In this document: positions 460 to 64,000 of the stretch, piece by piece
Numbering within the stretch: the stretch's first letter is position 1
Layout: every line of letters starts with the position of its first letter
Assembly (NCBI RefSeq): GCF_052425735.1
Contig: NC_135771.1
Coordinates: 9,486,001 to 9,550,000 of the forward strand
Reading direction: 5' to 3'
DNA length: 64,000 nucleotides
Origin: Oculina patagonica
Taxonomy: Eukaryota
Position numbers and translations under genes: made by a program
The notes under the pieces: generated by a model
Database searches by the model: none
What the model was told of the DNA's origin: nothing
What the model saw: the letters and a program-made list of their open reading frames with translations, nothing else

Positions 460-2830
460 ATTAAAGCAAGTCCTTACTCAAGTGGAACACAAACTTGGAC
501 GGGTTCGAGACCTAAACAACAAAAACGGTCTCATTCCAATTGACCTGGACATTTCGTTTTGGGGTAACATGACGTGTGAATACAAACTGAACGACGGCTG
601 TGCAGTAAAATCGTGGTCAATCCCTGATCCAGACACGTGCACGCATGCGCACGTGATCATACCTCTAGCTGACGTCACACCGGAGTTCATTCACCCATCG
701 GCGAAAAAAACGTTAAAGGTGATCGCGACGGAAGTGTGTGGTAAAGATGACTTCCGGTCTTTCTTTCCTGTCAGTCAAGTGTGTTTAGCCAATGAAATTC
801 ATTCAAATGAAGTAGAAAACGGCATGATACTTCCGGGAGTTTTGAAAAGTAAAGATCTTATCGTCAAGAAACCGTTCGCTCACATGGTACATTTAAATGG
901 GTGTTCTGAGCAGGCCTCTAGTCCAGTTGCTTTGGTAACGGGCGCGGCAAGGCGAATTGGGGCTAGTATTGCCAAACGATTGCATGAAGCAGGATATAAT
1001 GTATTGGTTCATTACAACACATCTGTCATAGAGGCTACGGAACTTGTAAAGCAAATGAATAGGTAACTACTTTTCTTTTACAACTTTGTACCAGTAAACC
1101 AAACCTTTATAATTTCGAAAAGTACCGGTTCAAGCCTAAGCCCTTAGTTCATTTGCTACTATACCATGCCATAGGCCCCATAAAGCATTTGGCTTGCTGC
1201 CTTACTGGTTTTAACGAAAACAGGGGCAAGTAAACGAAAGCTATACTGAGGGTCCTAAAGGGGTAAATGTGGTGGACGAAGGAGGAGGGGGGGGGGGGGG
1301 GGGGGGGTGGAGTTGATCAAATTCCATTTCCCACCCTCGTTCTCGTTTTGCCCAAGGTCCAGTTCCATTCCCAGTTTTTTGTTTTTGTTTCTTATCCCAG
1401 TTACCCAAATTCCTCTTTCCAAGTGAAACTAGGCAAATCTCAGTTCCCATTCAGATCAGGCCCCTATGTACTAAGCTAAATATTCCTTTGTACATTATTG
1501 CAGTGTACGTTTAAATTCAGCCCGGCAAATCCAAGGAGACTTGAAACACGACACCCGGAAAACTTCAGAGAGGATTATCGAAGAATCGTTGGAGGCCTGG
1601 GGACGACTGGACCTGTTAGTAAACAATGCGTCTCAGTTCCATTCAACAGATGTTGGAAAAATAACACAAGAAGATTGGAATGGACTCTTGGACGCAAACT
1701 TAAGTGCTCCATTCTTCTTGTCACAGGTACAGTTACGCATTCCTTTGTTACAATTTTGGTTTTTTCTTTGACTAATTTCAGTTTTTGGTTAACAAAATAA
1801 AATAAAAAAATAATAGTTTTCTTCGATCTTCAATCAACCTCTTTGGAAAGACATTTGCAATTCATTATTGAACTCAAGATCAACGGATCGGTATGTTTTG
1901 GTTTAAGAACTATTAAATTAGAAACATTAAGCTGCGAAAAGGCGCTCTATTTTTTTCTGGTTAGGTATCAATCGTTGATTTGCGTGTCCGTTCTGGGAGG
2001 CAGCGTCGCCGAGTGGTGAGGGTGCGGGCTTGAAGTGGGGAGGTCCCGGGTTGAAGTCCCCGCCTTTCTGTTCACTACCTCAGTGGAGTTGTCACACGGT
2101 AGACCCAAGATGAACTTCTCTGCCACGTTTGTAAATAGCCAACTGGTTCACCTCCTGCCAGTTGGGATTTTTAACCTTGCTATGTTAAATTTGTAATATT
2201 TGTTTCTGATGTTTGAATGTTCGGCCCCATCAGCACTTGATTTGCTACTTGTTTATCGAGGGTAAATTATATAATTTTTATTTATTCATTTATTTATTTG
2301 CGAGCGAAATGAAAAAGGGCAACATTCAAGATTTTCAGTTTGCCTTGACCAAACCAAATTAATTCCTCTGCAAGTTGTTTTTATCATATTATTACTGACC
2401 GCACTTTGAGCATCATTTTATGGACAAATAATTTTTATACTGTATTTCTTAGGCCGCCTTTCCTAGCTTAAAGACTTCACGTGGATGCATCATAAACCTG
2501 GTGGATATCCACGGTGACCGACCGCTGAACAATCACTCTGTGTATTGCATTTCAAAGGCGGGACTGCGCATGTGCACTATGGCGCTTGCCAAGGAATTCG
2601 CGCCTTTTGTCAGAGTCAACGGCGTGAGCCCGGGCGCTATCTTGTGGCCCGAGCAGTGGAAGGGTGTAACCGTGGAAACAAAAAAGGCAGAAATTCTCAA
2701 AAAGATTCCTTTGAGTCGAAGGGGTGAGCCTGGTGACATCGCCGAGGCAGTGCAGTTCCTTGCTTGTTCGGCTGGGTACATAACCGGGCAAGTGATAAAT
2801 GTCGATGGAGGCAGATCCTTGAATCAGTAG
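460..2830 (+). CDS. HPPK(FolK)-like / pteridine reductase (PTR1/FolM-type SDR) fusion protein, 5'-partial, spliced
   Basis: Exons 460-1062, 1504-1726 and 2453-2830 have GT-AG junctions with consistent phases (2, 2, 0) and end at TAG 2828-2830. HPPK C-terminal motifs: EHKLGRVR...IDLDI and IPDP...VIIPLADVTPEFIHP. SDR motifs: VALVTGAARRIG, VLVHYN, LDLLVNNAS, NLVDIHGDRPL, YCISK, VRVNGVSPG, YITGQVINVDGGRS. Upstream exon(s) lie outside the window. Confidence 0.9.
1995..2260 (+). mobile_element. tRNA-derived SINE-like element in intron
   Basis: tRNA-like head with A/B-box-like GCCGAGTGG...GGGTTGAAGTCC. The body GTAAATAGCCAACTGG recurs inverted at about 29743-29900. Confidence 0.65.
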
Positions 2831-2851: not shown

Positions 2852-3375
2852 CCTTATTATAGGGAATTAAGGCTTGTGTTAATTAAGGTATTTGAAATTA
2901 ACGCGACTTAAATTAACGCGAATCGAAGGAAAAAATAACGCGAAATAGAGGTTAACATTTCAAAATGAGGGAAATTAACGCGACGTACATAAAGATAGAA
3001 ACTTTTTGAGACAACAGGAACAAGTTGATTTCAACACTAGGCGTTTAATCCGAGACAGAAGCAATGTTCCTGATACTTTACCCAAACGTATGGGTTTAGC
3101 GGAGGAATCCGACCTCTTGGAGCCTTCTTCGCAATTTTAGTGATACCGGTAGATTTCCGCCCTGATGAAATTTTGCTTTTTCTTAAGAGATAAGAACGAC
3201 TCGACTGTATCGAGAAATTGGTGCCAAACTAATGGGAATTAAGGTCGCGGAAATTAACGCTCCACTCAGTTGACGGTGCTGAAATTAACGTTAACAAAAA
3301 TTAACGCGACTTAAATTAACGCGAATTTTTGAAATTTGCGTTAATTTCATGAAGCGTAAATTTCCTATAATAAAG
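2852..3375. mobile_element. MITE with TA flanks just downstream of the fusion-gene stop
   Basis: TIRs CCTTATTATAGG / CCTATAATAAAG, TA on both sides, and subterminal AAATTAACGCG repeats. Confidence 0.7.
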
Positions 3376-4040: not shown

Positions 4041-5579
4041 TCATAAGGCGACACTGCGAAACCGGGTCACCCACTTTTGCAGTCCTGTCATCCTGGTTTT
4101 TGGCCTTTTCGGTTTCTTTGGCTTCGCCTTGTGCTTCAAATAAAAGAAATTGAAATTTGTCACAATAATTGTCGATGGAATCGCTAGAACACAACAAACT
4201 CCAAATACTGCGCATAGCGCGCTGAAAATTTTTCCCGCCACTGTGGCGGGCGTCATGTCACCATACCCGACCGTTGTCATGGTAACGATAATGAACCAAA
4301 AGGTTGCTGGGATGCTAGTGAAAGTTGTTGATTCGTCAGTACTCTCGCAGTAGTATATCACGGATGAAAATAACACCAGGCTGATAGCTACACACACTAA
4401 TAACAGCATTAATTCCTGGAGGCTTGTTTGAATCGTCTTTAAGAGTACTTGTAGCCCTAAAGAGTAGCGGGTCAGTTTGAAGACCGAAAAGAACGTCAAA
4501 AACACAAGAATGCGTTGCAAAGGGATTGTTTCTGTTCCTGGTATCACCACCTGGATAATGATCATCATTACATAAGGGAAAAACGACAACATGTCAAAAA
4601 TACCTTGTGCAGAAAATAAGTAAACTGTTTTGTCCGTTGCACTGAACGCGCGAAGAACGTACTCGAGAGTGAACCACGATATGCAGAATTTCTCGCTAAA
4701 AGACCAGAAAAAACCCAGTTCACGACGCTTCGCTGAAGTGTCGGTTTTGTTTTGGTCGCAGCATTGGTCCAAAACAAACACCTCTTTTAGTGAAGGTAAC
4801 GTCTTGCCGCAGAGCAAAATGATGAAGAAGATTGTTATAAAAATCGTCCAGATATCTATGACTCTACGCAGAGGTGATGTTTCACGTGGTTTGGTCTGTT
4901 CGAAAAGCTTTCTGATTTTCATTGCGCACGTTTCACAATTTGAAACATCCGCCGACACAACATCACAACAGGGGCCATGTTCATTCCATGCTTCAACGTC
5001 AAGCCCAAGTTTGCACTCTGCGTCTTTTCCCAGTTGATAAAATCTGACTTCCTCCATGAATTCCCCCTCGGCTATTCCGTCCGGTTTCACAAGCACCCCA
5101 CCGGCAGGTCCCCCTGACTGATAGTAAAACAGAATGCTGTCAAAGACATATTTGTTTCTGTTGAAGTAAAATTCGTTGTGAATTGAGTCATAGTAAGGCG
5201 CTCTCTTAATCGGTGACCCAAGTAGTGAATCAGGCAGCCTTGCCAGTGTGCTTTCGTAAGTTTCGAACCTCATCCCAGAGACATTGATAGTAACTCGATT
5301 ATCAATGCTAGTAACTGTTAGATTTGGCACAATTTTCCTCACATCTGCGCCCGTTTTGCGTTTGGACCACACATCTTCTCTATTATTGTTATTGACGCTA
5401 TGTTCTTTCAGGTTCTTTCCCTGTTGTTGCGGTTTGCCATTTGTAACCGCGGACAGGAGAGGCCTGTCATCACTGGAGCATGAGCTTCTACAGCCATCAC
5501 AGTCTGCGATTATGTCTTCGCCTTGAGTGGGGACAGCTTGATAATTTACTCGTACTTTCCAAACTGGACTAGATGCCAT
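4041..5579 (-). CDS. Shaker-family voltage-gated K+ channel subunit, intronless CDS, probably regulatory/silent type (512 aa)
   Basis: T1 domain (RVTINVSGMRFETY...EFYFNRN...ILFYYQSGG), six TM segments, pore FWFIIVTMTTVGYGDMTP. First in-frame ATG is at 5579 (MASSPV). S4 is charge-poor and S6 reads IPST instead of PVP. Confidence 0.93.
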   Translation of the reverse strand: MASSPVWKVRVNYQAVPTQGEDIIADCDGCRSSCSSDDRPLLSAVTNGKPQQQGKNLKEHSVNNNNREDVWSKRKTGADVRKIVPNLTVTSIDNRVTINVSGMRFETYESTLARLPDSLLGSPIKRAPYYDSIHNEFYFNRNKYVFDSILFYYQSGGPAGGVLVKPDGIAEGEFMEEVRFYQLGKDAECKLGLDVEAWNEHGPCCDVVSADVSNCETCAMKIRKLFEQTKPRETSPLRRVIDIWTIFITIFFIILLCGKTLPSLKEVFVLDQCCDQNKTDTSAKRRELGFFWSFSEKFCISWFTLEYVLRAFSATDKTVYLFSAQGIFDMLSFFPYVMMIIIQVVIPGTETIPLQRILVFLTFFSVFKLTRYSLGLQVLLKTIQTSLQELMLLLVCVAISLVLFSSVIYYCESTDESTTFTSIPATFWFIIVTMTTVGYGDMTPATVAGKIFSALCAVFGVCCVLAIPSTIIVTNFNFFYLKHKAKPKKPKRPKTRMTGLQKWVTRFRSVAL

Positions 5580-6342
5580 CCTTGTTTCTAAGAGATGATA
5601 ATCCTTTGGATTTCCAGGGTCGCTAAGAAGGTGCACAGATCGAACCCCGGGCACAAAAGCAGTTCTGGACAATTCTTGTTTTCTTCTTTGTAGAACAAAT
5701 CTCGGTGACGTGACACAACCAAATTGCGTACGTACAAACCTCTCCAATTTAACGCTTTTTGCACTCTATACTCTGCTGCGCTTTAACCAGATCTGTTCCA
5801 TCGTTGGGACCTCGAGACATAGCATCAATTTTTTCCTGTAAGCCAGTTTTTCCGTCAATTCCTTCCCAGACTTACAATAACAAACACACATGAAAATCAT
5901 TGCTATAAAAAGAGCATTTGAACCCCGTGTGGTTCTAAGCTTTCTTTTCTATTTATGTTAATCATGACGATGTCAATAACTCCTGCTCGAAGTCCTTAAT
6001 GTTTTTCGGTGCTCAACAACCAAGTGTTCCTTTAGCAAAGTATTTGCTCACCTACAATAGCGACGAAAATCGGGACAATTTTGAGCGTTTGACAAATCCT
6101 GATTGTAAATGTGTAGGTATAAAATAAGAAACAGATATGCTGTTGTTTTTCTAACCTAAAAAACAGTGTCACAGAATAAACTCAACCACTGCATGATGTC
6201 AGCTCACTCACGCGTGTCAGTCACGCGAGAAAAATAAACAATTCAAGAGGTTCATGTCAGTCAAAGAGCGATCGTATTATGATCTTATTATCTATGAATG
6301 TCCATCCCAAGGATGATTCTTCAGCAGGCATCAGAAAGTTAA

Positions 6343-8469: not shown

Positions 8470-9342
8470 TTAATTTTTCCTTTCTTTGTTAGCGAGAAAG
8501 TTTATCGGTTTGTTTTAGTAAGGAAAACGTGTGGCAGGCTTGCGTGACATGATATTGTCACAGCCGCTTTGACTGACACTACGTCATTTTAAGTCACTTA
8601 AAAAACCCGACAGCTGAACAATTCGTTGTCATTGGAACATTTTTCATAGGATATGGCTAATTATCACACGATTGTTCAGCTGCTTTAAGAGTTGTGTTCT
8701 TAAAACTTCGTTTCAAGCTCATTGTTTTTCTGTAGTCATTAAACCAGGAATGCTGCTTCGAATAAGCGGATTAAATTCATTTCAAATGGAAACAGTGAAA
8801 CTCCGTTTGTTCATGATTGTTTTCTTTGTTTTTAGTACAGTTAAGCAGTTAATGTGCATTCAAATTTTTTACTATTTATGATACATTATTTATTTATACC
8901 GAAATAAATTGAATGTGTATTGCACCAAAAATCATTCCCGAAACACGAATGCAAAATGACCGCCGGACAGCAACTGATGACGTGACACAGCAAGGAATGG
9001 CATGGACTCTGGTCGTTGGATCATGGTTTCTAAATCGATTATCGACTGTACCATAGTTACAAAACGATGTTAGGGCCAAATGAGGATTGTTGGGGTTTCA
9101 CTCTACAGGAGTAAACAATTTTAATTTGTCGTTGTTGTTAGCACATTTCAGGTGTAAACCGTATCGTTTCCAAACCAATTGTAAGAGATCGTAAAGCGAA
9201 TTTTTTTTCTCTACATAATTAAAATTATACCTCACTTTTAACTGCCCAAATTTAGTATATTTTGCTTTATCCACAAGTCACCGTTATGTTTTATACGCGA
9301 AGTTCTTTGCAGATCAAATGATTTTTTTTTCTCTCCTTTTGA

Positions 9343-12070: not shown

Positions 12071-15000
12071 GTCTGAATTAAACCTTAAATGGAATCGTCA
12101 TTATACTGTGAGCATACCAAAAATATGTGCTCATTGAAAAGCTCAACACAGAATCAGGGTTGAACACAGTTTGGAAAGTTGTCACACAGCCATTGAGTGT
12201 GACGTCATAAGGACGCGTCATAATGCTTAGTGACGTCTTTAATGACAGTCGCAGGAGACGGGACAATAGAGAAAAGTACTTTGAAGGAAGTCCTAAACTT
12301 CCTTTTTTCCTATCTAACAGGTCAGTCAACTCAATGCTTTATTACATGGTTCATTAAAGAAAGAAGAGCTTATCTCTGGAAGAGAAGCGTGCGTCACTCT
12401 TGTTATTACCCAGTACAAATGTAAACATGGGTAAACTAATATTGTGGGAATTGCAGATAATGTATAGGCAGCCAAACGTTCTAATCTGTAGGGGAATCAA
12501 TATAATCTAACACAGCTCATCACTGATTACAATTGTTGGCATAATGTACACAAATGTTTTCAATAGGTGTTTCTGACAGTCGATGTGATGACACAAAAGT
12601 TTACAAATATATACTGTACAAATTCTATTAAAAATGAAATGCCAATATTGTCTCTATTGGCAATAACCTATACGTAGTAATTTCCCATCAAATTCGTTGC
12701 TTTGGCAAAAAATGAAACAAATATTTAATGGGTAATTGTGACAACGTACCGAGCCAAATTTCTTGTTTCTATCTCAAAACGGAAAGCATAATGATAAAAT
12801 TGCATTTTATCTGCAGAAAATTATGAAAATTAAAACCAAAGCTACATGTAAGGTAGATTTTTAAACTAATAAAGTCTATTAAAAACATTGAGGGAGACAA
12901 GTGAACATGCGTCATCATCTTGGCACAGAAGCAACCGAGAACAAACAATGTCCAGTCAATTGATGTAAGCTCACAAAAAGTCTGGGTCTTCAAAGTGAAC
13001 CTTCCGTTTTTGCAAGTACAGTTCACATGCTTTACCATTTTAGTTTTGAAGGTGTTGCGACCAACTTAATAACGAGTACAATCGTCTTATTATCGACTCT
13101 TAGTGAACTCCCATCATAATAAACCCATCTTGATCGATTCGTATCGCAAAAATGTCATGATACCAATAATAATCGTTAATTTCTCGAAACAGAGAATGAA
13201 AACACACCACTTTTTGCTAATATAAATTTATACAGGCAAATGTCTTTATTAAGCGTATCGAATTCGACAATTGGTGGCTAATTTTTTCGTATACATTTTC
13301 AAGCGAATAGGTGACGCCGGAAACGAAACACCAAAACAGTCTCGATAAAAAAGTCATTTTTTTTTTAAAAAAAATAAGTTATCTGCAAGAATGCCTCATA
13401 TTTTAACTCTGAACTGGAAAGATTAAACCGGGTTCAACACAAAGCTCCCTTGAAACCAATTTTCCCCCCACGCCATCCTTTTGGATCAACTGCGCAAACA
13501 ACGTTCTTCATCTCCGGTAGTACTTGAAGCAGAAATTTGATCAATTTATGCAATTAGCGAAATTGTTTGGGAAGCACTTTTAATTTGACATACAGCTTAT
13601 GAATCAATTCACTTTGGAAAAGAGTGTTCTGACAGCTAGTACGTTGAAAATTACAGTTTAGTCTAGCTCAGATCCTGAATATGAACTTTTTTCTTAGCTT
13701 TCTTGAAGCTGTATTTGGTGTCTTTTTCGTTTTTAACATTTTATGTAAATGATTTTATTCGATAGAGCTTCTCGATCAGGTTATTTTGTTTCAAATCGCC
13801 AAAAAAAGATAAGCTGCTGATTTATCGTCGGATGAAAGTTCAAGTTCTTCAGAAACAGCACGAAACCTTCTCCAGTTAAAAACTAAAACGTTAAAAAAAA
13901 TAAATAACTGTGATTTTGTATCCCCATCTTTGTTTTATGTTATCTTGCCTAGCAGATCTGAATTGCCGTTTTTGAACTAAAAAAGACTTTTTTTAATTAG
14001 TATTAAGCCGGATCAAGCCATACTTATTTTACTCATAGTCAAACGCATCCACGTTGCGAAATCGCATTAAAGTTTTAAATTATTACCGCATGTATCTTCT
14101 CTCGAGCTCACACGTCAAAGCAAAAATTGAAAGCGGAAAATTTGTTCGGTGATGAAATCTTAGCTTTAAAGCAGACAGTATCTAAGCGTTCCAACTGCAA
14201 ATTTCGTTAAGGTAGACATCATTTACATGTAAACTCAATATTTTCGTTCGTCGAAAAATATACAAATGATAAGTTCCAAAACTCGTTTCAACCTTCATTG
14301 TTCAATAGGGATTCTCCTGCGATTCTTTTCACAATTTTTGCAGTATTTTTTTGCACGGTTCAGACTGTTGCTTTCAGGTTGTACTTCATCTTAAGACAAT
14401 TTTTTACGAAACAAAAAGTCGCCTTTAGCAGCATACCACAACCCCTCTAACCAAACCTACCCAGCACACAAATTCTTAATATCTTTTGTGTTCCTAATAA
14501 AAGCTCTGCTTACCTCGTTTTCTTCTGTCGCAGTTCTTCTGTGCGAAAGACAAGTTGTAAACTAGTTGGTAGCTATCTCCAAGCAAGTAGGTGTCCCGCT
14601 TATATCAGCTGCAAGTGTTTACTGAAGCACCAGTGAAATTGTTATTGAAACACAAGCAGTTGTATTTACCTTTTATATTCTCCTGTTGATGAACCAGTAA
14701 CAACTAATTTTCATCAGACTTCCTTGCAACGGATGTCTGTCATTGGTTTTGTAAAAGACGTCGTAAAGCTGTCAATCTTGTAGTCGTCAGCAGCCTAGAT
14801 GATTCTTGATTAACGTCATAAAAATAGCCCAGGATTGTTAATCAAATTGTCAGTTTCCTTAAAAAGTGTAATTTACGGTCCACACACTGCACAAAAACGT
14901 TTTTGAAATTAGAGATGTGTGGAGGTTAAAAAAAGTTTTTTTTTTTTTCGGGGGGGGGGGTGCCTTTATCTATCCATTGTTCAACTTCGTACGCGAGAAA

Positions 15001-15462
15001 ATATCAATTTTAATTAAAAATCGGACGATTTATATCGTTAGACATTATTGTTCACATTCAACCCTTACAATATGGTTGACAGGTATCACCTTTAGCTAAG
15101 ATAAGGCGTGTGTCTTATCAAAAAATGGGTTGGCGCGTCTTAACTTTAGCTGCTCAATTATGGAGCGTGTGACCTTTACAATTTGGTTAGGATGTATAGC
15201 TCTAAGCTAAAATTTGGCTTTTTAATATGGTTTGTGGTTATCGCATTTAGCTCAATTAAGGTTATGTCGATTTTAAAGTTTGGCTGCAAGTATCGCATTC
15301 GGGCTAACGTCGAAATTTGGGTTTGGATGTGTTGCCCTTACTCAACCTCTGGGAACGAGGTTAGCCCTTACCGTTCTGACCAGTTTGATTGGCAGGAGTC
15401 ACCTTTGTCTAAATTTGTGCGTCGCCTTTTCAGTTTAGAACTTGTGTATTACCCTTACAGTC

Positions 15463-15479
15463 AGACAGACAGACAGACC

Positions 15480-15529
<50 letters not shown>

Positions 15530-15530
15530 T
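15463..15530 (+). repeat. (GACA)n microsatellite
   Basis: Direct tetranucleotide run with one interruption. Confidence 0.95.
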
Positions 15531-15879
15531 GACTTTATTTATCCACGGTAGTTCCTCTCAGCAAAAATTCTATTAACAAATATAAGAATTAAAACTATTA
15601 TGATATAAAAGTAAATTACAAGAGAAATGACTCAAAACTAAACTAACTACCTACCTATTCAAGAATGGTAATAAAAACAAAGAAACAAAAAGGTACTGCT
15701 CTTCAGGGATGCCGTGTCTCACTCACTAACTGTGATTGACCCGTGTCGTATTTACCTTAGTTTAGTTGTCTAGTGTCCTTTTGTAACATTTTAACATGTA
15801 GTTACACATGGTCATGTAAATTGAGTTTTGAGTATGTTTGGTGCGTACAAGTTTGTTGGTTACATATGGTCAGGGTCGT

Positions 15880-16200
15880 ATTGTTTTTTATACCATGCCA
15901 TAGAAAATACAGCCAATCAGAATACAGGAAAGCCGTTGTATATTCGACGGTATTCAACCCAACCTTCCCATAGTGCGCTGCGACTGTATTCTCGACGAAA
16001 TTTAGTAAGCGTATTTTCTATGGCATGGTATAAAATAGTTACACAACACTTTCTCGTGGTATACTATGGAATATCCCACTTGTCACTTGCATTTTCTTGG
16101 CATACACACTCGCCTAAAGGCTCGTGTGTACACCGAGAAAATACAAGTGACTCGTGGGATATTCCATAGTATACCACTCGAAAGCGTTGCATAACTAGTA
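15880..16200. mobile_element. MITE-like element with internal inverted repeats
   Basis: TTTTATACCATGCCATAGAAAATAC / GTATTTTCTATGGCATGGTATAAAA pair, and a second GTGGTATACTATGGAATATCCCAC inverted pair. Confidence 0.6.
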
Positions 16201-17084
16201 TGTACGTGATGCCGTGATAAGCACAAAAGGTCGTGTACAACCCTTGCGCTTGGGTTAGGGCGGTTACTGTTGTACTGCCCTTATAGTTTGCTTGGCGTGT
16301 GTTTCCTTGGGTACACATTATCGTGTGCCCTTAAATGGATTTGGGCGGTTCACCTTGCTTACCAATGGGTGTGTACTACCGTATGTTGCCTTGGTTACAT
16401 GTAATTGGGTTTTACACTAAAATCTTGGATCGCGCTTAACGCCTTGGTTACGTATAATAGTGTACTCCTTCAGTATTAATGGCGCGTGTTCCCTTGTTAC
16501 ATATGGTTGTGCGATTCCCTGGAAGTTTGATTTGAGTGTTTCGCATTGATAACATATGAACAAGTATCACCCTTGATCGGCGCTTGTTTCCTGGCATGGT
16601 TACACATGGTCATGTAAATTCCTTTAAGTTTGACTTGAGCGTTTCTCTTTGTTTGCATGTGAGCTTGTATCGCCCTTCAAGTTTGATTGGCTTGCATCAC
16701 CTCAGTTACATACTGTTTGAGTTTGGGTGGCACACGCCACCTTAGTTACAAATGGTCGTGTATAACCAGAAGAAGAGAAAACCTATTTTCAATTGGATAA
16801 GGGCGTTCTCCTTGAGAAGATACGGTCGTTTGATTGGCGTATGCTACCTTGAATACTTTATCGTGTATGTTATCTATGTTACAATAGCCAGACCACTACC
16901 CGTGTATTGAAACTTTGAAATGCGGTATGTGAAACACATGCACAATTGTTTTAACGACAAGTCATTTAGAAGCGGGCAGCGTGAAACGCGCGCAAACTAC
17001 AGACAGTTTCTTTTCCTTCTTCAAATATTATTTTGGAAAATTACTGCAGAAGGGCAACACTGGTCAACAGTACCAAAACTATGA

Positions 17085-28705: not shown

Positions 28706-31700
28706 ATGGTACGTTATTCTGTTTTTCTTTTTATGTTACGTTTGAATTCTGTATTATCATTTTCTAACCGAAATATAGGCTCTGCGCTTCAATATTTCCG
28801 TCTCGACTCGCTTATGAGGCACTGCCGGTTGAAACGGAATTAATGCAAATTTTTTAAAGGCATCCCTCAATTTTTCTGCCGTGTAAGTTAAATTATTGTA
28901 CAAAGTTGAAAAACACGTTGAACTTAACAAACCGACTGTACGAAACAAGTAACTCTATGTGATCTAGCTAAGCCATATTTAATATATTCTTTCTTTTTCC
29001 TTGCAATTAAAAAATAATATTAACAAAATCGATTATCTTTTCTCCTGGCTTCACTAAACACAATAACAAGGTTTTCAGCTTTTCCTAGTTATAAAAAATT
29101 AAAGTAACTATTTTGTATTCATAAAAATTTCATCGGTGTGTAAAAATGTCGGCTTTTAGTTGAATTTCACTTCTTGCTCATTAGAACTTCCAATCATATA
29201 GACGTGTGGTACATTGCAGTCAACTATATAGTTAGTATGCAGCAATTGTATAAAAAGCGCATAAGAATTTAAGCATGCTGTTTCAAAGCTTTAAACAGTC
29301 TTTTGCGGGAAGCTTCTGTAAACTGACTCAAAATAGAAGCGACTTTCTTAACAAAATGAGAGCTGCTATATTAACAAATAAAACTCCCAGTCATTTGTTC
29401 CGGGTTTTCTCTAAAATGTTACTGAAATAACACATTTAAAAAGGAGAGACACTGCACAAAACACGTTCTCATAGTGTATTGTAGGTTATGGCAAAACATT
29501 GTTGCATTTTGTAATTCATCGAGCAGTCCTTATTATAATACTACAATGTCACATTTTGAAATAAAATCCCCTAAAGTAACTTACAAGGCAGAAATTCCTT
29601 TCCTTTTGCCTGGCGTTGTATCGCGGCTCCTGCCAATTTGTACAAATTGATCAATTGCTTTTTCCCCCGGTACATTTACAGTTCGAATGCGCTCTAGGTG
29701 TCATATAGACATTGAATATTATAAAAATAAAATAAAATCACTCTATTTATGTGTCAGTGTATTAAGCATTGTTGTGCTAACTGAGGAAACTGTAAATAGA
29801 TAAACACATATTACAAATCGAACAAAAAACTTGTTAAAAAAACCAACTGTCAGGATGCTGACCAGTTGGCTATTTACAAAGCGTAGAGGAGTTGAATTCG
29901 GTACCCTGATGCACTGTTTCGTTTGCCTATTTTTATTCACAGGAAAAACTATCGCGTGAAGAAGTACAAGGTTGGTATTATTTTAGCGTTATTTGGTCCG
30001 TTCGCAGGCTCTCCTGCTCGCAGGTTAAGCGTGATTCTAAAAAAAAAGCCGACACACATACATCGATACTACTGTCTTTGAAAATAATTAGAAGTGAAGA
30101 TGCAATACGTACATTGATCAGAATACATATGTCCTTTAGGAATAGTAACAGGAGACTAACTGATAACGTGATAGTAACAGGAGGCAAACTGTATATATGG
30201 ACATTCCAGCTTTGTCTTGGATTACTTCGACCCAATCATGTCAACTACCTTTTATATTATGTCACGTTCCTTTATCAATTTTTTTTCACAGCATGAAAAC
30301 ATAACTTTACTGTGGTAAAACGCGCAAGTAAAGCTGGCGTAAATTTGGAATTTAATAAGCTTTACGGTAACCTTTTCATTTTTTGAAGCTGACCTTTATG
30401 CCAACTTTACACTCAAGTTTAAAGGCAGTTAAAAAACTCATTAATAATTCATAAAGAAAATACAAAAGAAATTAATGTTTAATGAGTGTCTTTATATCTG
30501 ATAAAGACACGGCTAAACTTTACGTCCAATTTTCTAGGCCAAAATAACCCCTAATCTAAATATTAGTGCAAGAACGAGTTGATCTACATCAGAAGATTTT
30601 TAAGCCGTTCAATAAATTCGCAGTTCGTGTTTTATCAAGTCTAAAACACTCGGCTGCGCCTCGTGTTTTAAACTTGATAAAACACTGCTGCTCATTTATT
30701 AAACATTACATAAAGAAACACTTTACACCAACTTTAAATCACATTTACACGCGGTAGCGTAAAGGTCGTTTTAACCACCTTTAACAACATTTAATTTATG
30801 GTGTGAAGTTGGATAACCAACTTTACACCAGATTTAACCACCCGGCTTTAATTTCACGTAAATCCCAATTTCCATGCTGCGTTTATTTGTTGTTATTTAG
30901 CATGCGATCGTTCATATTCTCAGAATACCTTGAGGTCTTTGAATACTTTGGCCAGGACAAGAATGGAAAGATATCAACAAAGCAACTCAGGCAGGCAATG
31001 CGCATGGTCGGCCTCAACCCAACTGACCAGCAGATACAGGCTCTTATTAATGAAAAGGAATACGATGGTAAGTTTAATGCACAACCACTTATTTAATGTT
31101 ACTGACTGTTATTCACTTATTTAATGTTCATTGACACTGCAATGCCTTTATCCTGGCTTGCGTCTCCGTTTGGCCAGGACTTGCGTGCACTTGCGTTGAC
31201 TTGCGTTCACTTTCGACGAGATAAAATTTGCACTTAAGTAAACACAAGGTTTTCACCGTTTGGCCACCGATCGCAAGTCAACGTTTTATTGTAGTTTAGT
31301 TCAAATGCTGAAGCACCTCGTAGCATTTTTTATGATCATGACTTTTTGCAAACTTGTCTACACTTGCGTTTCCGTTTGGCCACCCTACACAAGTCTGTAC
31401 GCAAGTTTAATTTGCAATTACTTGCGTTAACCTGCGTTACCGGATCCATGGCTAATGGTTAAAAAGAAAAATCATGACGAGCGCGCCAACGACAAAGGTT
31501 TAATAAGCCGTGCATTAGCTCTCTATCATTTGCAAAACAACAACGCGAATTGACCATATTCTGTTTTTTTAATTTTGTCTGTTTCATCTTTTTCTGACAT
31601 TTTTTTTATTTTTGTTTCCTTTGTTTTTTTTTTCCTTCTCTTTAATCTATCAGAACGGAGCAAAAACCAGTCTTAAAGGACCCTAGTCGGCCATCCCTTT

Positions 31701-61100: not shown

Positions 61101-64000
61101 ATAATTTTATTGTACTGTTGTACTTACCGGAACCGATTGGCACTGAAACATGATACACCTCATAGATTTCCTCTGACACCTGCTTGTTTACCCGACGAGG
61201 ATTTTTCAATTTTTTCGCTTCGCCTCTATGAGATGGGTAACAGCAACTGGATGACAACTTTTGGTAATGTGTTGTCAGTTCGTATCGGTGCTTTGGACAC
61301 ACAGTAATCCTTCCTCTCTCTTTCTTTGACAGGGAATGTAATCCAGCGCGATTGAGAATAACTTCACTCTCTGTGATCTGTGTACCAACACCACCGCTTC
61401 CACTGACACCCAATTTAGTTAGATATTGGGTTAAATCCTTGCTACATGCTTCTAAAGGAATTACATGAAGCTCGGTTGGAGCGTATGGTGTTGCACCGCA
61501 CACACTGTTTTCATTTGAGAATGAGCAACTCATTTTCCATCGTACATTATATTTCAAGCCGGCTATGTAGATAACATCGCAAAACCTGGTGCCTGTATGA
61601 CGCGTTGGCATAAAAATATATGTACACGGTATATATAAAGGCCGAAACAGTACTGTCTGCAGTTAAATATAAATATATATATTTATTTAACCGGCTTTAT
61701 CAATATAAAATAAGTAGCTGTAAAAAATATAATTGGCACTGGAGAATCTGCAGAGCAGACGGATGGAGTGATGGACAGAAAAAAAACAAAAACAAAAAGG
61801 CAACATATACTTTATTCAAACTCGTTCGTAATTTTATTATTTTATTAAAATATATTTTTTAATTGCTGTCATAGTATAAAACTAAATAAACAAGCTACTC
61901 CCTTTGTAAATAGCATAAAAATTGATTCGGCCCAATGCTAGCCCCTCTAACCCACCTGTGATACACCTGTTGAAACAATCACCCACCCTACCCTCCTTGG
62001 GAAAAGCTGAATTCCAGGCCCCTGCGAGTTGTCAAATTCAAAATGGCGTCGCTCTGTTATTTTCGTGTTTTCCACGTTTTCTTCACTGTTTAATGAATTA
62101 TCGACGGGTTGAGATATATTTCGGAAGGAATTCAGTCAATTGCATTTATTTAACCTCGGAAAAACTCAAAGTGGACTCGAGGAGTGGTTTAAAAACACAT
62201 TGGTTGCTTCGTGTGTTGTTGAAGACGATATCGCCTACATGAACTACATTGAGGTGCTCTAAAATCTTGCTGTTTCAATGGCCCAAAAAGATTATTGCTG
62301 TTTATGATAGAGGAAAGGTAAGAGCACTTATCTGTGGTATCCAATGATTTCTGCAGTTATAGTTGTGTGTTCTACGGGAACTCGAAAATGGGCAAAATCT
62401 TGCTCATTCGAAAATGTAAAAAGTAGGTGTTCAAAACGTGGACGGTGTAAACTCACCTGTGCTTATTTCGTACATTTCTGGATTTTTACAAGTAGTTCTA
62501 TGTCTGTTTATGCCACACAGAAAATAAAAATTCCGTTCGTTTAATTTTGTAGTTTATAGTGGTTTTCAAATTTGGGTCAAATTTACTGGTAAATCTAGGC
62601 CCTGATGGGGTGATAAATAGTGGACCTCATATCTCCTATACAAAAACGATTGAGGAGCCAAGTTTAGTATATTTATTCATAAGTCCACCTAACCTATTTA
62701 TGGTGTTAGTATGAAGCAAATCGGCCGACCCCCATCTTTGACTGCCTGCCTGGATTTCTCAGTCAGTGACTGTTAATGGCATAAAATGTGTAAATTCTGG
62801 ACCCAAACAGTGCTATTTGACCAAAATTAGATCAAATTAGTTTTATCTGTAGGTTGGAAAATTTTTTCTTTGAGAAAGAGCTAATTAATTCGAAATTTTC
62901 GTAGGAATGATTATCCTAGCTCACGAAACAACAAATTTAATTTCAATTTGGCGGCCAAAGACTGTTGAATTTCGATTGAATTTCCCCATAAATGGACGTA
63001 CTAAAGTTCTAAGAGCTTGCACATCAAAATAAAATAGGTTTGAAGACGGCTAGTCTGATTATTTAGTAAAACTGTCATATTTTTCTAAAATCATTTGGAG
63101 CTACATGGTTTTCCCACGCTGTGACACGCTTATATGGCGCTGTTTCAGCTCGGGTAGAAGGGCTGTGAATTCTGCATGTAAAGGCGGGCTATGTCTCATC
63201 CCTTCTAGCCGGGTAACTCGGTTAGCCGGGGCACCCTACCTCCATGTAAACAGGTCCGACAAAGTAAGCGCACTGCAGACAATACATCATGGAAATAAGG
63301 AAGGGGGGGGGGGGGGGGGGGGGGGGGACAAGGAAAGGCACTTTCATTTAAGAAGTTTCTAGTATTCCTGTTTCCTGAGACATAATTATCATAGATTGCA
63401 TTATCAACCGTGATCACTATTAAGCGATGTGATGTTAGATGTTTCACAGCTTTTGCTTGGGCCGCCCGTTGTTGACAGTACCAAAATAATGCACGTCGTG
63501 AAAACACATCAGAGTTGCCACACAATCAATCAAAACGTATGTCAATATTCCAATCCGTATATCTTATCTTTAGTTTATGATAACTGTTTAGTAATAAGAT
63601 AAATTTCTAAATTCGGTACGTATCATTAACATAAGGAAAGACTGGCCAATACATTTATACAATGCATATATAATTTATATAAAGACTGAAGTAAAAACAC
63701 CGGCTGTTTATTATTATCACTGTTAAAAACCACATACATGATTTATGAACAAGAAAAGTCAATACAGACAAGGCAGCAATATTTACATGTCGGTTTTTCC
63801 TTTACCACGATGAATAAGAATTCTGGTTATCAAAATCCCATGGATGATTTTTTTCACGTCTTGGTGTATGTGGACTAGACTATTTAGCTGACCACCTTAA
63901 ATATAACTCAAACCAACCTTGTCAACATTGTTTTCTTGATAGGTAACCCAATCATTGCCATTTAGAGACAAATGGAGATTGTACTCTATTGTCCAGTGAT
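46169..64000 (-). CDS. Multi-exon extracellular protein: F5/8C (discoidin)-FN3-FN3-RPTP juxtamembrane-like domain-Ig; partial at both ends
   Basis: In-frame GT-AG exons: >64000-63918 (WTIEYNLHLSLNGNDWVTYQE), 53275-53422 (VFNGN...ARFIRLQP...LRVEVFG), 50761-51048 and 49815-50117 (FN3), 49082-49190, 47889-48198 (YYNKPLQPNTSYRVFLRAF), 47578-47620, 46169-46435 (Ig; C...W...DSGVYEC). A further exon at about 44965-45026 is possible. Confidence 0.85.
52492..53229. mobile_element. PIF/Harbinger-type MITE
   Basis: TIRs GGGTGCGTTTCTTTGG(G)AAAATCCAAA / TTTGGATTTTTTCCAAAGAAACGCACCC with TTA TSD. Confidence 0.82.
55358..61533 (-). CDS. Sola3-like transposase (~1185 aa, spliced), second catalytic Asp changed to Gly
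   Basis: Exons 61128-61533, 60795-60847, 60197-60259, 56353-58918 and 55358-55827 join in frame (3558 nt). Motifs: DWAMKYLP..RE..YGKRGKSWH, YLKSGNAGCYH, QSGKDVCDR; N-terminal Cys/His cluster; C2H2 CEEEGC...HMDTGRH. Confidence 0.8.
58990..60190. repeat. Two ~400-bp tandem intronic units inside the transposon (first one interrupted by a SINE)
   Basis: AAAACGTTTTATA.GGGGAGGCACC.CGCCCTGAAATCCAAC starts at about 58992 and 59779; the downstream sequence is near-identical. Confidence 0.8.
59047..59395 (+). mobile_element. tRNA-derived SINE with V-domain-like block, interrupted by ~95 bp AT-rich sequence
   Basis: A box TGGCGCAGTGG, B box GGTTCGATTCC, and GGTTTTTCTCCGGGTTCTCCGGTTTTCCTCCC. Confidence 0.75.

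Follow-up and report, generated by a model that had tools for sequence, protein, structure and literature searches.

What does an intron-containing gene that joins an HPPK-like domain to a pteridine reductase do in a cnidarian genome? To our knowledge, the textbook picture of animals is that of auxotrophs for folate and for the pterin branch apart from the synthesis of tetrahydrobiopterin (BH4), and a selectively kept animal gene with FolX/FolB-, HPPK- and PTR1-type enzymes clashes with that picture. The gene analysed here occupies positions 460–2830 of a 64,000-nt stretch of Oculina patagonica DNA (the window); all coordinates are positions in the window, and HPPK residues are numbered as in E. 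coli FolK. The window holds the last three exons, and thus the C-terminal two thirds, of a real and conserved cnidarian gene. From sequence comparison, its full product of about 587 residues is predicted to carry a FolX-type FolB-family domain, an HPPK-type domain and a PTR1/FolM-type short-chain dehydrogenase/reductase (SDR), and it is a fusion of three of the four genes of a bacterial pterin cluster. The gene model, the architecture and the bacterial origin, taken jointly, are in our view highly probable.

Gene structure and full-length product

All parts of the gene lie on the plus strand. The first exon present in the window (460–1062) is preceded by the 3′ part of an intron (1–459), and its first base supplies the third position of a split Gly codon. 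It encodes the C-terminal half of the HPPK-type domain (residues 1–95 of the partial product), a variable linker (746–919) and the N-terminus of the SDR. A GT...AG intron (1063–1503) separates it from SDR exon 2 (1504–1726), and a further GT...AG intron (1727–2452) precedes SDR exon 3 (2453–2830). With splice sites marked by a slash, the exon borders read ctgttttcag/ATTAAA...GAATAG/gtaactac, attattgcag/TGTACG...TCACAG/gtacagtt and tatttcttag/GCCGCC...TAG, respectively; every intron border is GT-AG, and the three exons spliced together give an open product of 400 residues that ends at the stop codon at 2828–2830. The exons lie where an earlier note on this DNA had placed them from the letters alone. 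The linker that the same note put at about 50 residues is present and is somewhat longer, at about 57. Because exon 460–1062 by itself matches both the Pfam HPPK profile (PF01288, positions 63–116, 26.4 bits against a gathering cutoff of 25.7) and the first 45–50 positions of SDR models, the HPPK-SDR fusion is independent of splicing, and this claim of the earlier note holds, including the profile check on which it was to be judged.

A profile search yielded two contiguous open reading frames (ORFs) from related species, P0385 and P0386, of 587 and 588 residues. The contig behind the former is 2.7 kb long, is filled by the ORF and stems from the assembly of a public run; it is transcript-like, and so provides the domain-joining spliced transcript that the earlier note had called for, in a related species. 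In tblastn searches, the two proteins map on the window with residues 187–387, 388–462 and 458–587, and their sequence runs through the junctions as predicted (...PAG/LKQV..., ...LNS/VRR... and ...FFLSQ/AAFPSLK...), which confirms the exon junctions apart from splice prediction. Residues 1–186 gave no tblastn match anywhere in the window; an upstream exon inside the window is ruled out by this null result, and the first coding exon is therefore placed just upstream of the window start. At the closest ortholog locus (L001, on a 1.08-Mb contig), a Met-starting upstream ORF with Pfam FolB and the N-terminal half of HPPK is found at 8724–9284, ending approximately 694 bp before the next exon. The upstream exons that the earlier note proposed to recover are thus represented by L001, P0385 and P0386.

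Intron positions are common to the window, L001 and a more distant ortholog, L002, from a TARA scaffold, and the position of intron 1063–1503 is among those common to both loci. Downstream of the gene, a 568-aa ORF of the voltage-gated K+ channel type lies on the minus strand (4041–5747), and its L001 counterpart (14696–16219, Pfam BTB_2 and Ion_trans) has the matching position and strand; the K+ channel neighbourhood is syntenic between the species. A search with the product of exon 460–1062 found 36 orthologous exon-sized ORFs at 45–80% identity on eukaryote-like contigs, in whose alignment the linker differs in length. The ratio of nonsynonymous to synonymous substitution rates (dN/dS) is 0.149 against L001 and 0.142 against the P0385 transcript in the HPPK-type C-terminal half, 0.175 and 0.108 in the SDR, and 0.64 and 0.45 in the linker. 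Both enzyme parts are thus under constraint, and the linker is fast-evolving.

The three domains

The N-terminal domain, which lies outside the window, scores 94.4 bits with Pfam FolB on the full-length ortholog P0385 and passes the generic FolB-domain model (85.8 bits, cutoff 45). The domain retains the Glu, Tyr, Glu and Lys residues that FolB and FolX share. Its matches among solved structures are led by E. coli FolX (1B9L, 7e-20) and P. aeruginosa FolX (1e-16), with the best FolB at 1e-12, and it has the C-terminal motif KPHALRFSES in common with FolX. The N-domain tree sets the folP-linked FolBs apart (SH-aLRT 98) and places E. coli FolX with the cnidarian-type clade. The domain is thus probably nearer to FolX, a 7,8-dihydroneopterin(-triphosphate) epimerase/aldolase, than to FolB. 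The earlier note had set the HPPK-reductase fusion apart from the familiar joining of HPPK to DHNA; that distinction falls, since a FolB-family domain does lie upstream, although it scores as FolX rather than FolB.

The HPPK-type domain gives 94.7 and 93.8 bits with Pfam HPPK in full-length orthologs. It was aligned with E. coli FolK from NC_000913.3. T42 is kept throughout the family. The loop-3/Mg-site motif GRVRDLNNKNGLIPIDLD lies at 497–550 (alignments A1, A2 and A5), and a subfamily signature IPDPDTCTHAHVIIPLAD at 620–673, where column counts against E. coli FolK place Asp at the canonical His115 and His at the canonical Phe123. Family-wide, Asp or Glu stands at His115, Phe, Tyr or His at Arg121, and His at Phe123; the window copy has Asp, His and His at these positions and none of the canonical residues, which we take to be pocket residues of HPPK. 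Within loop 3, the window copy reads GLIP (527–538) for the APRT of the family, just before IDLD, with Ile at R92, while it keeps E, R, R, D and D at E77, R82, R84, D95 and D97. The change consists of five substitutions in 12 nt, without an indel, and amounts to four consecutive residue replacements; a compensated frameshift behind it is thereby ruled out. The R92-equivalent Arg is also missing in P0014, P0022, P0036 and P0383. In P0389, a tri-domain relative of 521 aa, the IDLD Mg-site segment is absent; the protein may represent a decayed copy or an isoform, or the gap may stem from faulty assembly.

The SDR is matched from end to end by NF006598 ('pteridine reductase', PRK09135), whose positions 3–52, 55–125 and 126–248 fall on the three exon products in succession with 57.6, 72.6 and 173.4 bits, a sum of about 304 scored as pieces; exon 2 corresponds to P0385 residues 388–462. 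The full-length orthologs P0385 and P0386 give 331.4 and 293.7 bits with this model, which has a curated cutoff of 288. The hallmarks that the earlier note had read from the sequence were all located: TGAARRIG (938–961), NNAS (1622–1633) and VDIH...YCISK (2501–2557), the last with the Asp/Tyr/Lys triad in VDIHGDRPLNNHSVYCISK. TGAARRIG conforms to TGX3RXG, a motif by which PMC1971073 and PMC13259868 define pteridine reductases; PTR1 chains are the top PDB hits for the stretch, and the motif's Arg, which replaces the usual Gly, is invariant in 32 orthologs. Among solved structures, the SDR is best matched by T. brucei PTR1 (159 bits), followed by FabG (125 bits), and the P0385 triad is in register with the DAMVD...YNMGK segment of T. 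brucei PTR1. On these grounds, the domain is most probably an NADPH-dependent pteridine reductase of the PTR1/FolM kind, PRK09135 type.

A bacterial pterin gene cluster

Bacterial relatives were scanned with one genome per species. In addition to two earlier bacterial FolB-HPPK loci (L003 and L006), 80 loci were kept, and all were searched with E. coli FolE, FolP, FolB, FolX, FolK and FolM and a pteridine reductase. An HPPK-type gene is present at 81 loci, for which linkage to folP or folE was counted within 2.5 kb. They fall into two groups. Eleven are linked to folP: none of these has a PTR-type SDR, four have folE, and all six alignable HPPK sequences carry His, Arg and Phe at 115, 121 and 123. 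At the remaining 70 loci, which form the D/H subfamily, folP is absent within 2.5 kb, a result that covers these flanks and not whole genomes. There the FolX-type gene either neighbours the HPPK-type gene or is fused with it, a PTR-type SDR lies directly upstream on the same strand at 34 loci, folE is found at 41, and an SDR or folE is nearby at 56 of the 70. Position 115 is Asp or Glu in 52 of 56 alignable sequences, and position 123 is His in 41. Likewise, no DHPS domain was found in any eukaryote member examined, whole genomes not having been searched. The folE, PTR-type SDR, FolX-type and HPPK-type genes behave as one unit distinct from folate operons.

Independent fusions among the relatives join FolX to HPPK, HPPK to FolE and HPPK to SDR. 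The fusion of HPPK to FolE (GTP cyclohydrolase I), of about 380 aa, occurs in Acidimicrobiia and relatives (L028, L035, L052, L058, L063, L082, L083 and L094; P0430), and proteins that fuse HPPK to the SDR come from Planctomycetota, among other groups (P0255 and P0348; two ESM Atlas clusters, with 172 and 89 members). Among the scanned loci, no extra operon partner (hydroxylase, carbinolamine dehydratase or DHPS-like gene) recurs, and sugar-nucleotide and methyltransferase genes near the cluster are confined to one Anaerolineae subclade. In these Anaerolineae, which are the nearest to the eukaryotes (L003, L016–L020 and L042), the folE/FolX-HPPK pair is flanked by carbohydrate and methyl genes, namely those for a sugar-1-phosphate nucleotidyltransferase, an HAD phosphatase, a GDP-mannose-dehydratase-like epimerase, a methyltransferase, an S-adenosylmethionine synthetase and glycosyltransferases. 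The flank may represent a pterin-glycoside cluster or a chance neighbourhood; the species are closely related, and the recurrence is weak evidence.

Distribution and origin

The earlier note had placed the gene in a cnidarian setting, which proved too narrow. The FolX-HPPK module also occurs in other cnidarians and in marine protists. Sphaeroforma arctica has the tri-domain architecture in an 828-aa protein annotated as 'hypothetical protein' (XP_014155004.1), and the architecture recurs in MMETSP transcripts of 597 aa, in an intronless gene of 580 aa on TARA scaffolds and on further eukaryote contigs. In Branchiostoma belcheri and Lingula anatina, only the FolX-HPPK part is present, among animal genes and under the RefSeq name 'FOL1-like'; no SDR exon was found within 10 kb of the amphioxus and Lingula genes, and downstream SDR exons are ruled out over that distance. 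At the Lingula locus L101 (10001–10909 and 18974–19708), the intronless gene P0392 is followed, some 9 kb further downstream, by a second FolX-HPPK-like stretch, and a Lingula paralog on another scaffold (P0383) has lost conserved FolB-family residues and has a very long branch in the tree of the N-domain. Among named cnidarian proteins, the only match is a 169-aa fragment from Desmophyllum pertusum, with no named full-length protein; most of the sequences come from assemblies of metagenomes or of single runs, and we infer the range within Cnidaria from this match and from the literature on Nematostella.

A careful search was used for a tree of the FolX+HPPK module with 73 rows, and quick searches for the SDR and N-domain trees. 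In the former, the ten eukaryote rows, including amphioxus P0381, form one clade, with an ultrafast bootstrap of 98 and SH-aLRT of 97. This clade lies inside a larger one (100/99) with 15 Chloroflexota-Anaerolineae rows, in which the inner branching order is weakly supported. The eukaryote SDR domains are also monophyletic (94); they stand among stand-alone pteridine reductases of proteobacterial type and do not group with the SDRs of Chloroflexota-type clusters. The trees thus bear out horizontal acquisition, one of the two origins suggested in the earlier note. The FolX-HPPK module appears to have entered eukaryotes from a Chloroflexota-like donor and to have gained introns. Read most simply, the history comprises a single ancient transfer of FolX-HPPK, its later joining to a reductase of other bacterial affinity, and many losses; transfers between eukaryotes may also have taken place.

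Proposed role and rival explanations

The explanation we favour overall, as probable but well short of certain, is that the protein is a eukaryotic fused form of the bacterial pterin cluster that acts in a branch of reduced pterins other than folate. It would act downstream of GTP cyclohydrolase I, where the FolX-type and HPPK-type steps would process the side chain of 7,8-dihydroneopterin or its triphosphate; the SDR would afterwards convert the 7,8-dihydropterin ring to its tetrahydro form. Instead of folate, the protein would yield an unconjugated reduced pterin of the monapterin or 6-hydroxymethylpterin type. Four observations favour a non-folate role: no locus of the subfamily is linked to folP, the HPPK pocket is altered, the N-domain is nearer to FolX, and Sphaeroforma has canonical folate genes (folB-folB and folK-folP; PMC4224340) besides its tri-domain protein. 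The FolX affinity points this way because FolX together with FolM makes tetrahydromonapterin, in E. coli and P. aeruginosa, according to the work of Pribat (2010) as cited in PMC3405516 and PMC13259868. The earlier note had left the enzyme between pterin and folate metabolism; of these, a separate pterin branch seems likelier and a folate role less so, in a subfamily that is never linked to folP and has altered pocket residues. Taken by itself, the step from folate to a separate reduced-pterin branch falls just short of an even call.

Several observations weigh against this explanation. The N-domain misses both equivalog cutoffs, with 98 bits for the FolX model NF008418 (cutoff 152) and 64 bits for the folB model TIGR00525 (cutoff 72), and the N-domain tree, built on a short alignment, shows E. 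coli FolX on a long branch. The residues E77, R82, R84, R92, D95 and D97 of true HPPK are kept almost family-wide, as is N55; we take the former to be Mg/phosphate residues and the latter to be a pterin residue. Bacterial HPPK-type members also pass the NCBI folK cutoff (96 bits against 54). The loss of the R92 equivalent in the window copy casts doubt on catalysis by the HPPK-type domain in O. patagonica, and the junction-spanning transcripts come from species related to O. patagonica. In a gammaproteobacterium, Amphritea, the PTR gene lies 3 kb from a canonical folB-folK.

This last arrangement is what would be expected of a partial de novo folate pathway, composed of a working dihydroneopterin aldolase, a true HPPK that would form 6-hydroxymethyl-dihydropterin diphosphate and an SDR serving as dihydrofolate or dihydropteroate reductase (FolM as 'DHFR1'), with DHPS supplied by an unrecognised host enzyme or by symbionts. 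Such a pathway is in keeping with the strong Pfam FolB and HPPK matches of the full-length orthologs, the retained FolB-type Glu/Tyr/Glu/Lys set and the 'FOL1-like' names given by RefSeq, and FolM is able to reduce dihydrofolate, while folM-like genes cluster with pterin-branch genes (PMC1971073). Yet folP lies beside canonical folK at 11 loci and at none of the 70 loci of the subfamily, in which positions 115, 121 and 123 are altered throughout; Sphaeroforma has canonical folate genes as well, and DHPS is held to be absent from animals (PMC4224340). The N-domain is nearer to FolX, whose aldolase rate is below 1% of that of FolB, and both the PRK09135-type enzyme of Xylella and PruA use dihydropterins, PruA being poor on dihydrofolate (PMC1971073; PMC13259868). 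We therefore regard the partial folate pathway as rather unlikely. With the Mg/phosphate residues intact and the folK cutoff passed, a true pyrophosphokinase that feeds another acceptor, or a folate route whose DHPS comes from another source, nevertheless stays a serious rival. The gene might instead be a remnant of an ancient transfer that is now decaying: some species would still transcribe it, but it would have no function, at least in the HPPK-type domain of O. patagonica. The four consecutive catalytic-loop replacements of the window copy, R92 equivalent included, would fit decay, as would the loss of this Arg in four other relatives, the missing IDLD segment of P0389 and the patchy distribution among animals. 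An intact ORF over three exons with good splice sites, dozens of orthologs at 45–80% identity, and dN/dS values of 0.14–0.15 in the HPPK C-terminal half and 0.11–0.18 in the SDR against 0.45–0.64 in the linker make decay very improbable.

Bacterial contamination or a misassembled chimera would explain why the nearest relatives of all three domains are bacterial, but spliceosomal introns stand at matching positions in several species, contiguous ORFs cross the junctions, the K+ channel neighbour recurs on the 1.08-Mb contig of a relative, the amphioxus and Lingula copies lie among animal genes (for amphioxus, see also PMC4224340), and the eukaryote copies are monophyletic. Shared introns, junction-spanning ORFs, synteny and low dN/dS make both the contamination and the pseudogene readings unlikely, and for contamination the probability is negligible. 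The earlier note was thus right that this is a genuine intron-containing animal gene and not a contaminant, on the strength of conserved introns, synteny and transcripts of related species; its own argument, from host-type repeats in the introns, is thin, amounting to one 95-nt piece and a G-run.

Returning to the fused pterin-cluster protein that we favour, a bolder proposal can be made, although we consider it a long shot: some marine animals (cnidarians, amphioxus and brachiopods), together with unicellular relatives, would use a module of bacterial descent to produce, in addition to BH4, a second tetrahydropterin of the monapterin or 6-hydroxymethylpterin type, and the D115/H123 'HPPK' would be a phosphate-handling step on the triphosphate side chain of dihydroneopterin or dihydromonapterin, and not a folate pyrophosphokinase. 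According to a recent review, the monapterin route still has an unidentified phosphatase (PMC13259868), and it is a speculation that the HPPK-type domain fills this gap. If the proposal were true, the phosphate-handling role would extend to the folE/SDR/FolX-type/HPPK-type cluster across Chloroflexota, Actinomycetota and Planctomycetota. The fusion ties together three parts of a widespread uncharacterised bacterial cluster that is cleanly apart from folP-linked folate genes, and one recombinant protein could assign a function both to the animal gene and to a large bacterial subfamily annotated as FolK. The gene also bears on the effects of HPPK and PTR1 inhibitors on non-target marine animals, on how 'folate biosynthesis' calls in metagenomes of coral holobionts are to be read, and on the record of ancient gene transfer from bacteria to eukaryotes.

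Other features of the locus

A dispersed-repeat piece of about 95 nt in the second intron (2113–2205) has a copy of 78% identity at 29893–29802. No tRNA was found in the introns of the gene by ARAGORN, and the single Rfam match in them is sub-threshold; a tRNA-derived short interspersed element or a known RNA in the introns is ruled out by these two results. Long G-runs occur in the first intron (1283–1310) and at 63297–63327. Directly 3′ of the stop codon lies a AATTAACGCGA-rich stretch (2870–3340) with a perfect 29-nt direct repeat (2895–2923 and 3298–3326), which may be a small element inserted in the 3′ untranslated region; an AATAAA is found at 3369. Loosely tandem CCGAAGAnTTCC-like units occupy positions 1–170.

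Comparison with known systems

The closest functional parallel is the FolX and FolM pathway of E. coli and P. aeruginosa which, as far as the citing accounts describe it, also has a FolB-family epimerase acting after GTP cyclohydrolase I and a TGX3RXG SDR that reduces a 7,8-dihydropterin. Its parts are unfused and it has no HPPK-type domain, whereas the cnidarian protein has both the fusion and the HPPK-type domain. The cnidarian SDR is also of the PRK09135 type (331 bits), while the E. coli FolM model NF005066 gives 114.5 bits on the related P0247. FolX itself was formerly thought to be confined to gammaproteobacteria (PMC3405516).

Trypanosomatid PTR1 resembles the cnidarian SDR in the Arg of TGX3RXG and in having its Asp/Tyr/Lys triad in register. 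It differs in being a stand-alone enzyme with a salvage role and longer loops that also reduces oxidised pterins, and the Leishmania PTR1 model gives 180 bits where 322 are needed. The bacterial relatives of PTR1 assayed so far reduce dihydropterins only (PMC1971073; PMC13259868).

The folate FolB-FolK(-FolP) fusions, such as S. pneumoniae SulD (2CG8) and fungal FOL1, have the same order of a FolB-family domain followed by HPPK, and 2CG8 aligns over residues 1–182. Unlike them, the cnidarian protein lacks DHPS or a link to folP, its FolB-family domain is of the FolX type, its HPPK-type domain has Asp115 and His123 for His and Phe, and a pteridine reductase is added at the C-terminus. Bacterial HPPK-SDR fusions, which are uncharacterised, contain both of these domains in matching order but are without the FolX-type domain. 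Their HPPK parts fall outside the eukaryote clade, so the bacterial fusion arose independently, and an origin of the eukaryote architecture from it is ruled out.

Among animals, Maguire et al. (2014) described a prokaryote-like folB-folK fusion of Branchiostoma floridae that lies on a native contig, is transcribed and was likely acquired by horizontal gene transfer; it grouped with Planctomyces in their tree, and its retention without folP was remarked on as odd (PMC4224340). They also listed a 'putative folB-folK fusion' in Nematostella that was not alignable. The Branchiostoma gene and the cnidarian fusion belong to one gene family, with amphioxus P0381 in the eukaryote clade, and differ in that no SDR stands within 10 kb of the amphioxus and Lingula genes. 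The SDR fusion, the FolX-type identity, the link to an operon and the affinity with Chloroflexota are all absent from that paper, and clustering of folM-like genes with pterin-branch genes had been noted by de Crecy-Lagard et al. (2007; PMC1971073). No description of the tri-domain protein was found in a full-text literature search whose coverage falls short of all journals; one apparent prior report (PMC4604110) was a false lead, the 'hppks' in it being sea-urchin polyketide synthase genes. The claim of the earlier note that the system was undescribed therefore stands for the SDR fusion, the FolX type and the operon link, and fails for folB-folK, already reported in Branchiostoma and, doubtfully, in Nematostella. 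What is new is the tri-domain architecture and its bacterial context, and what was known is the enzyme families and a partly reported horizontal transfer into animals.

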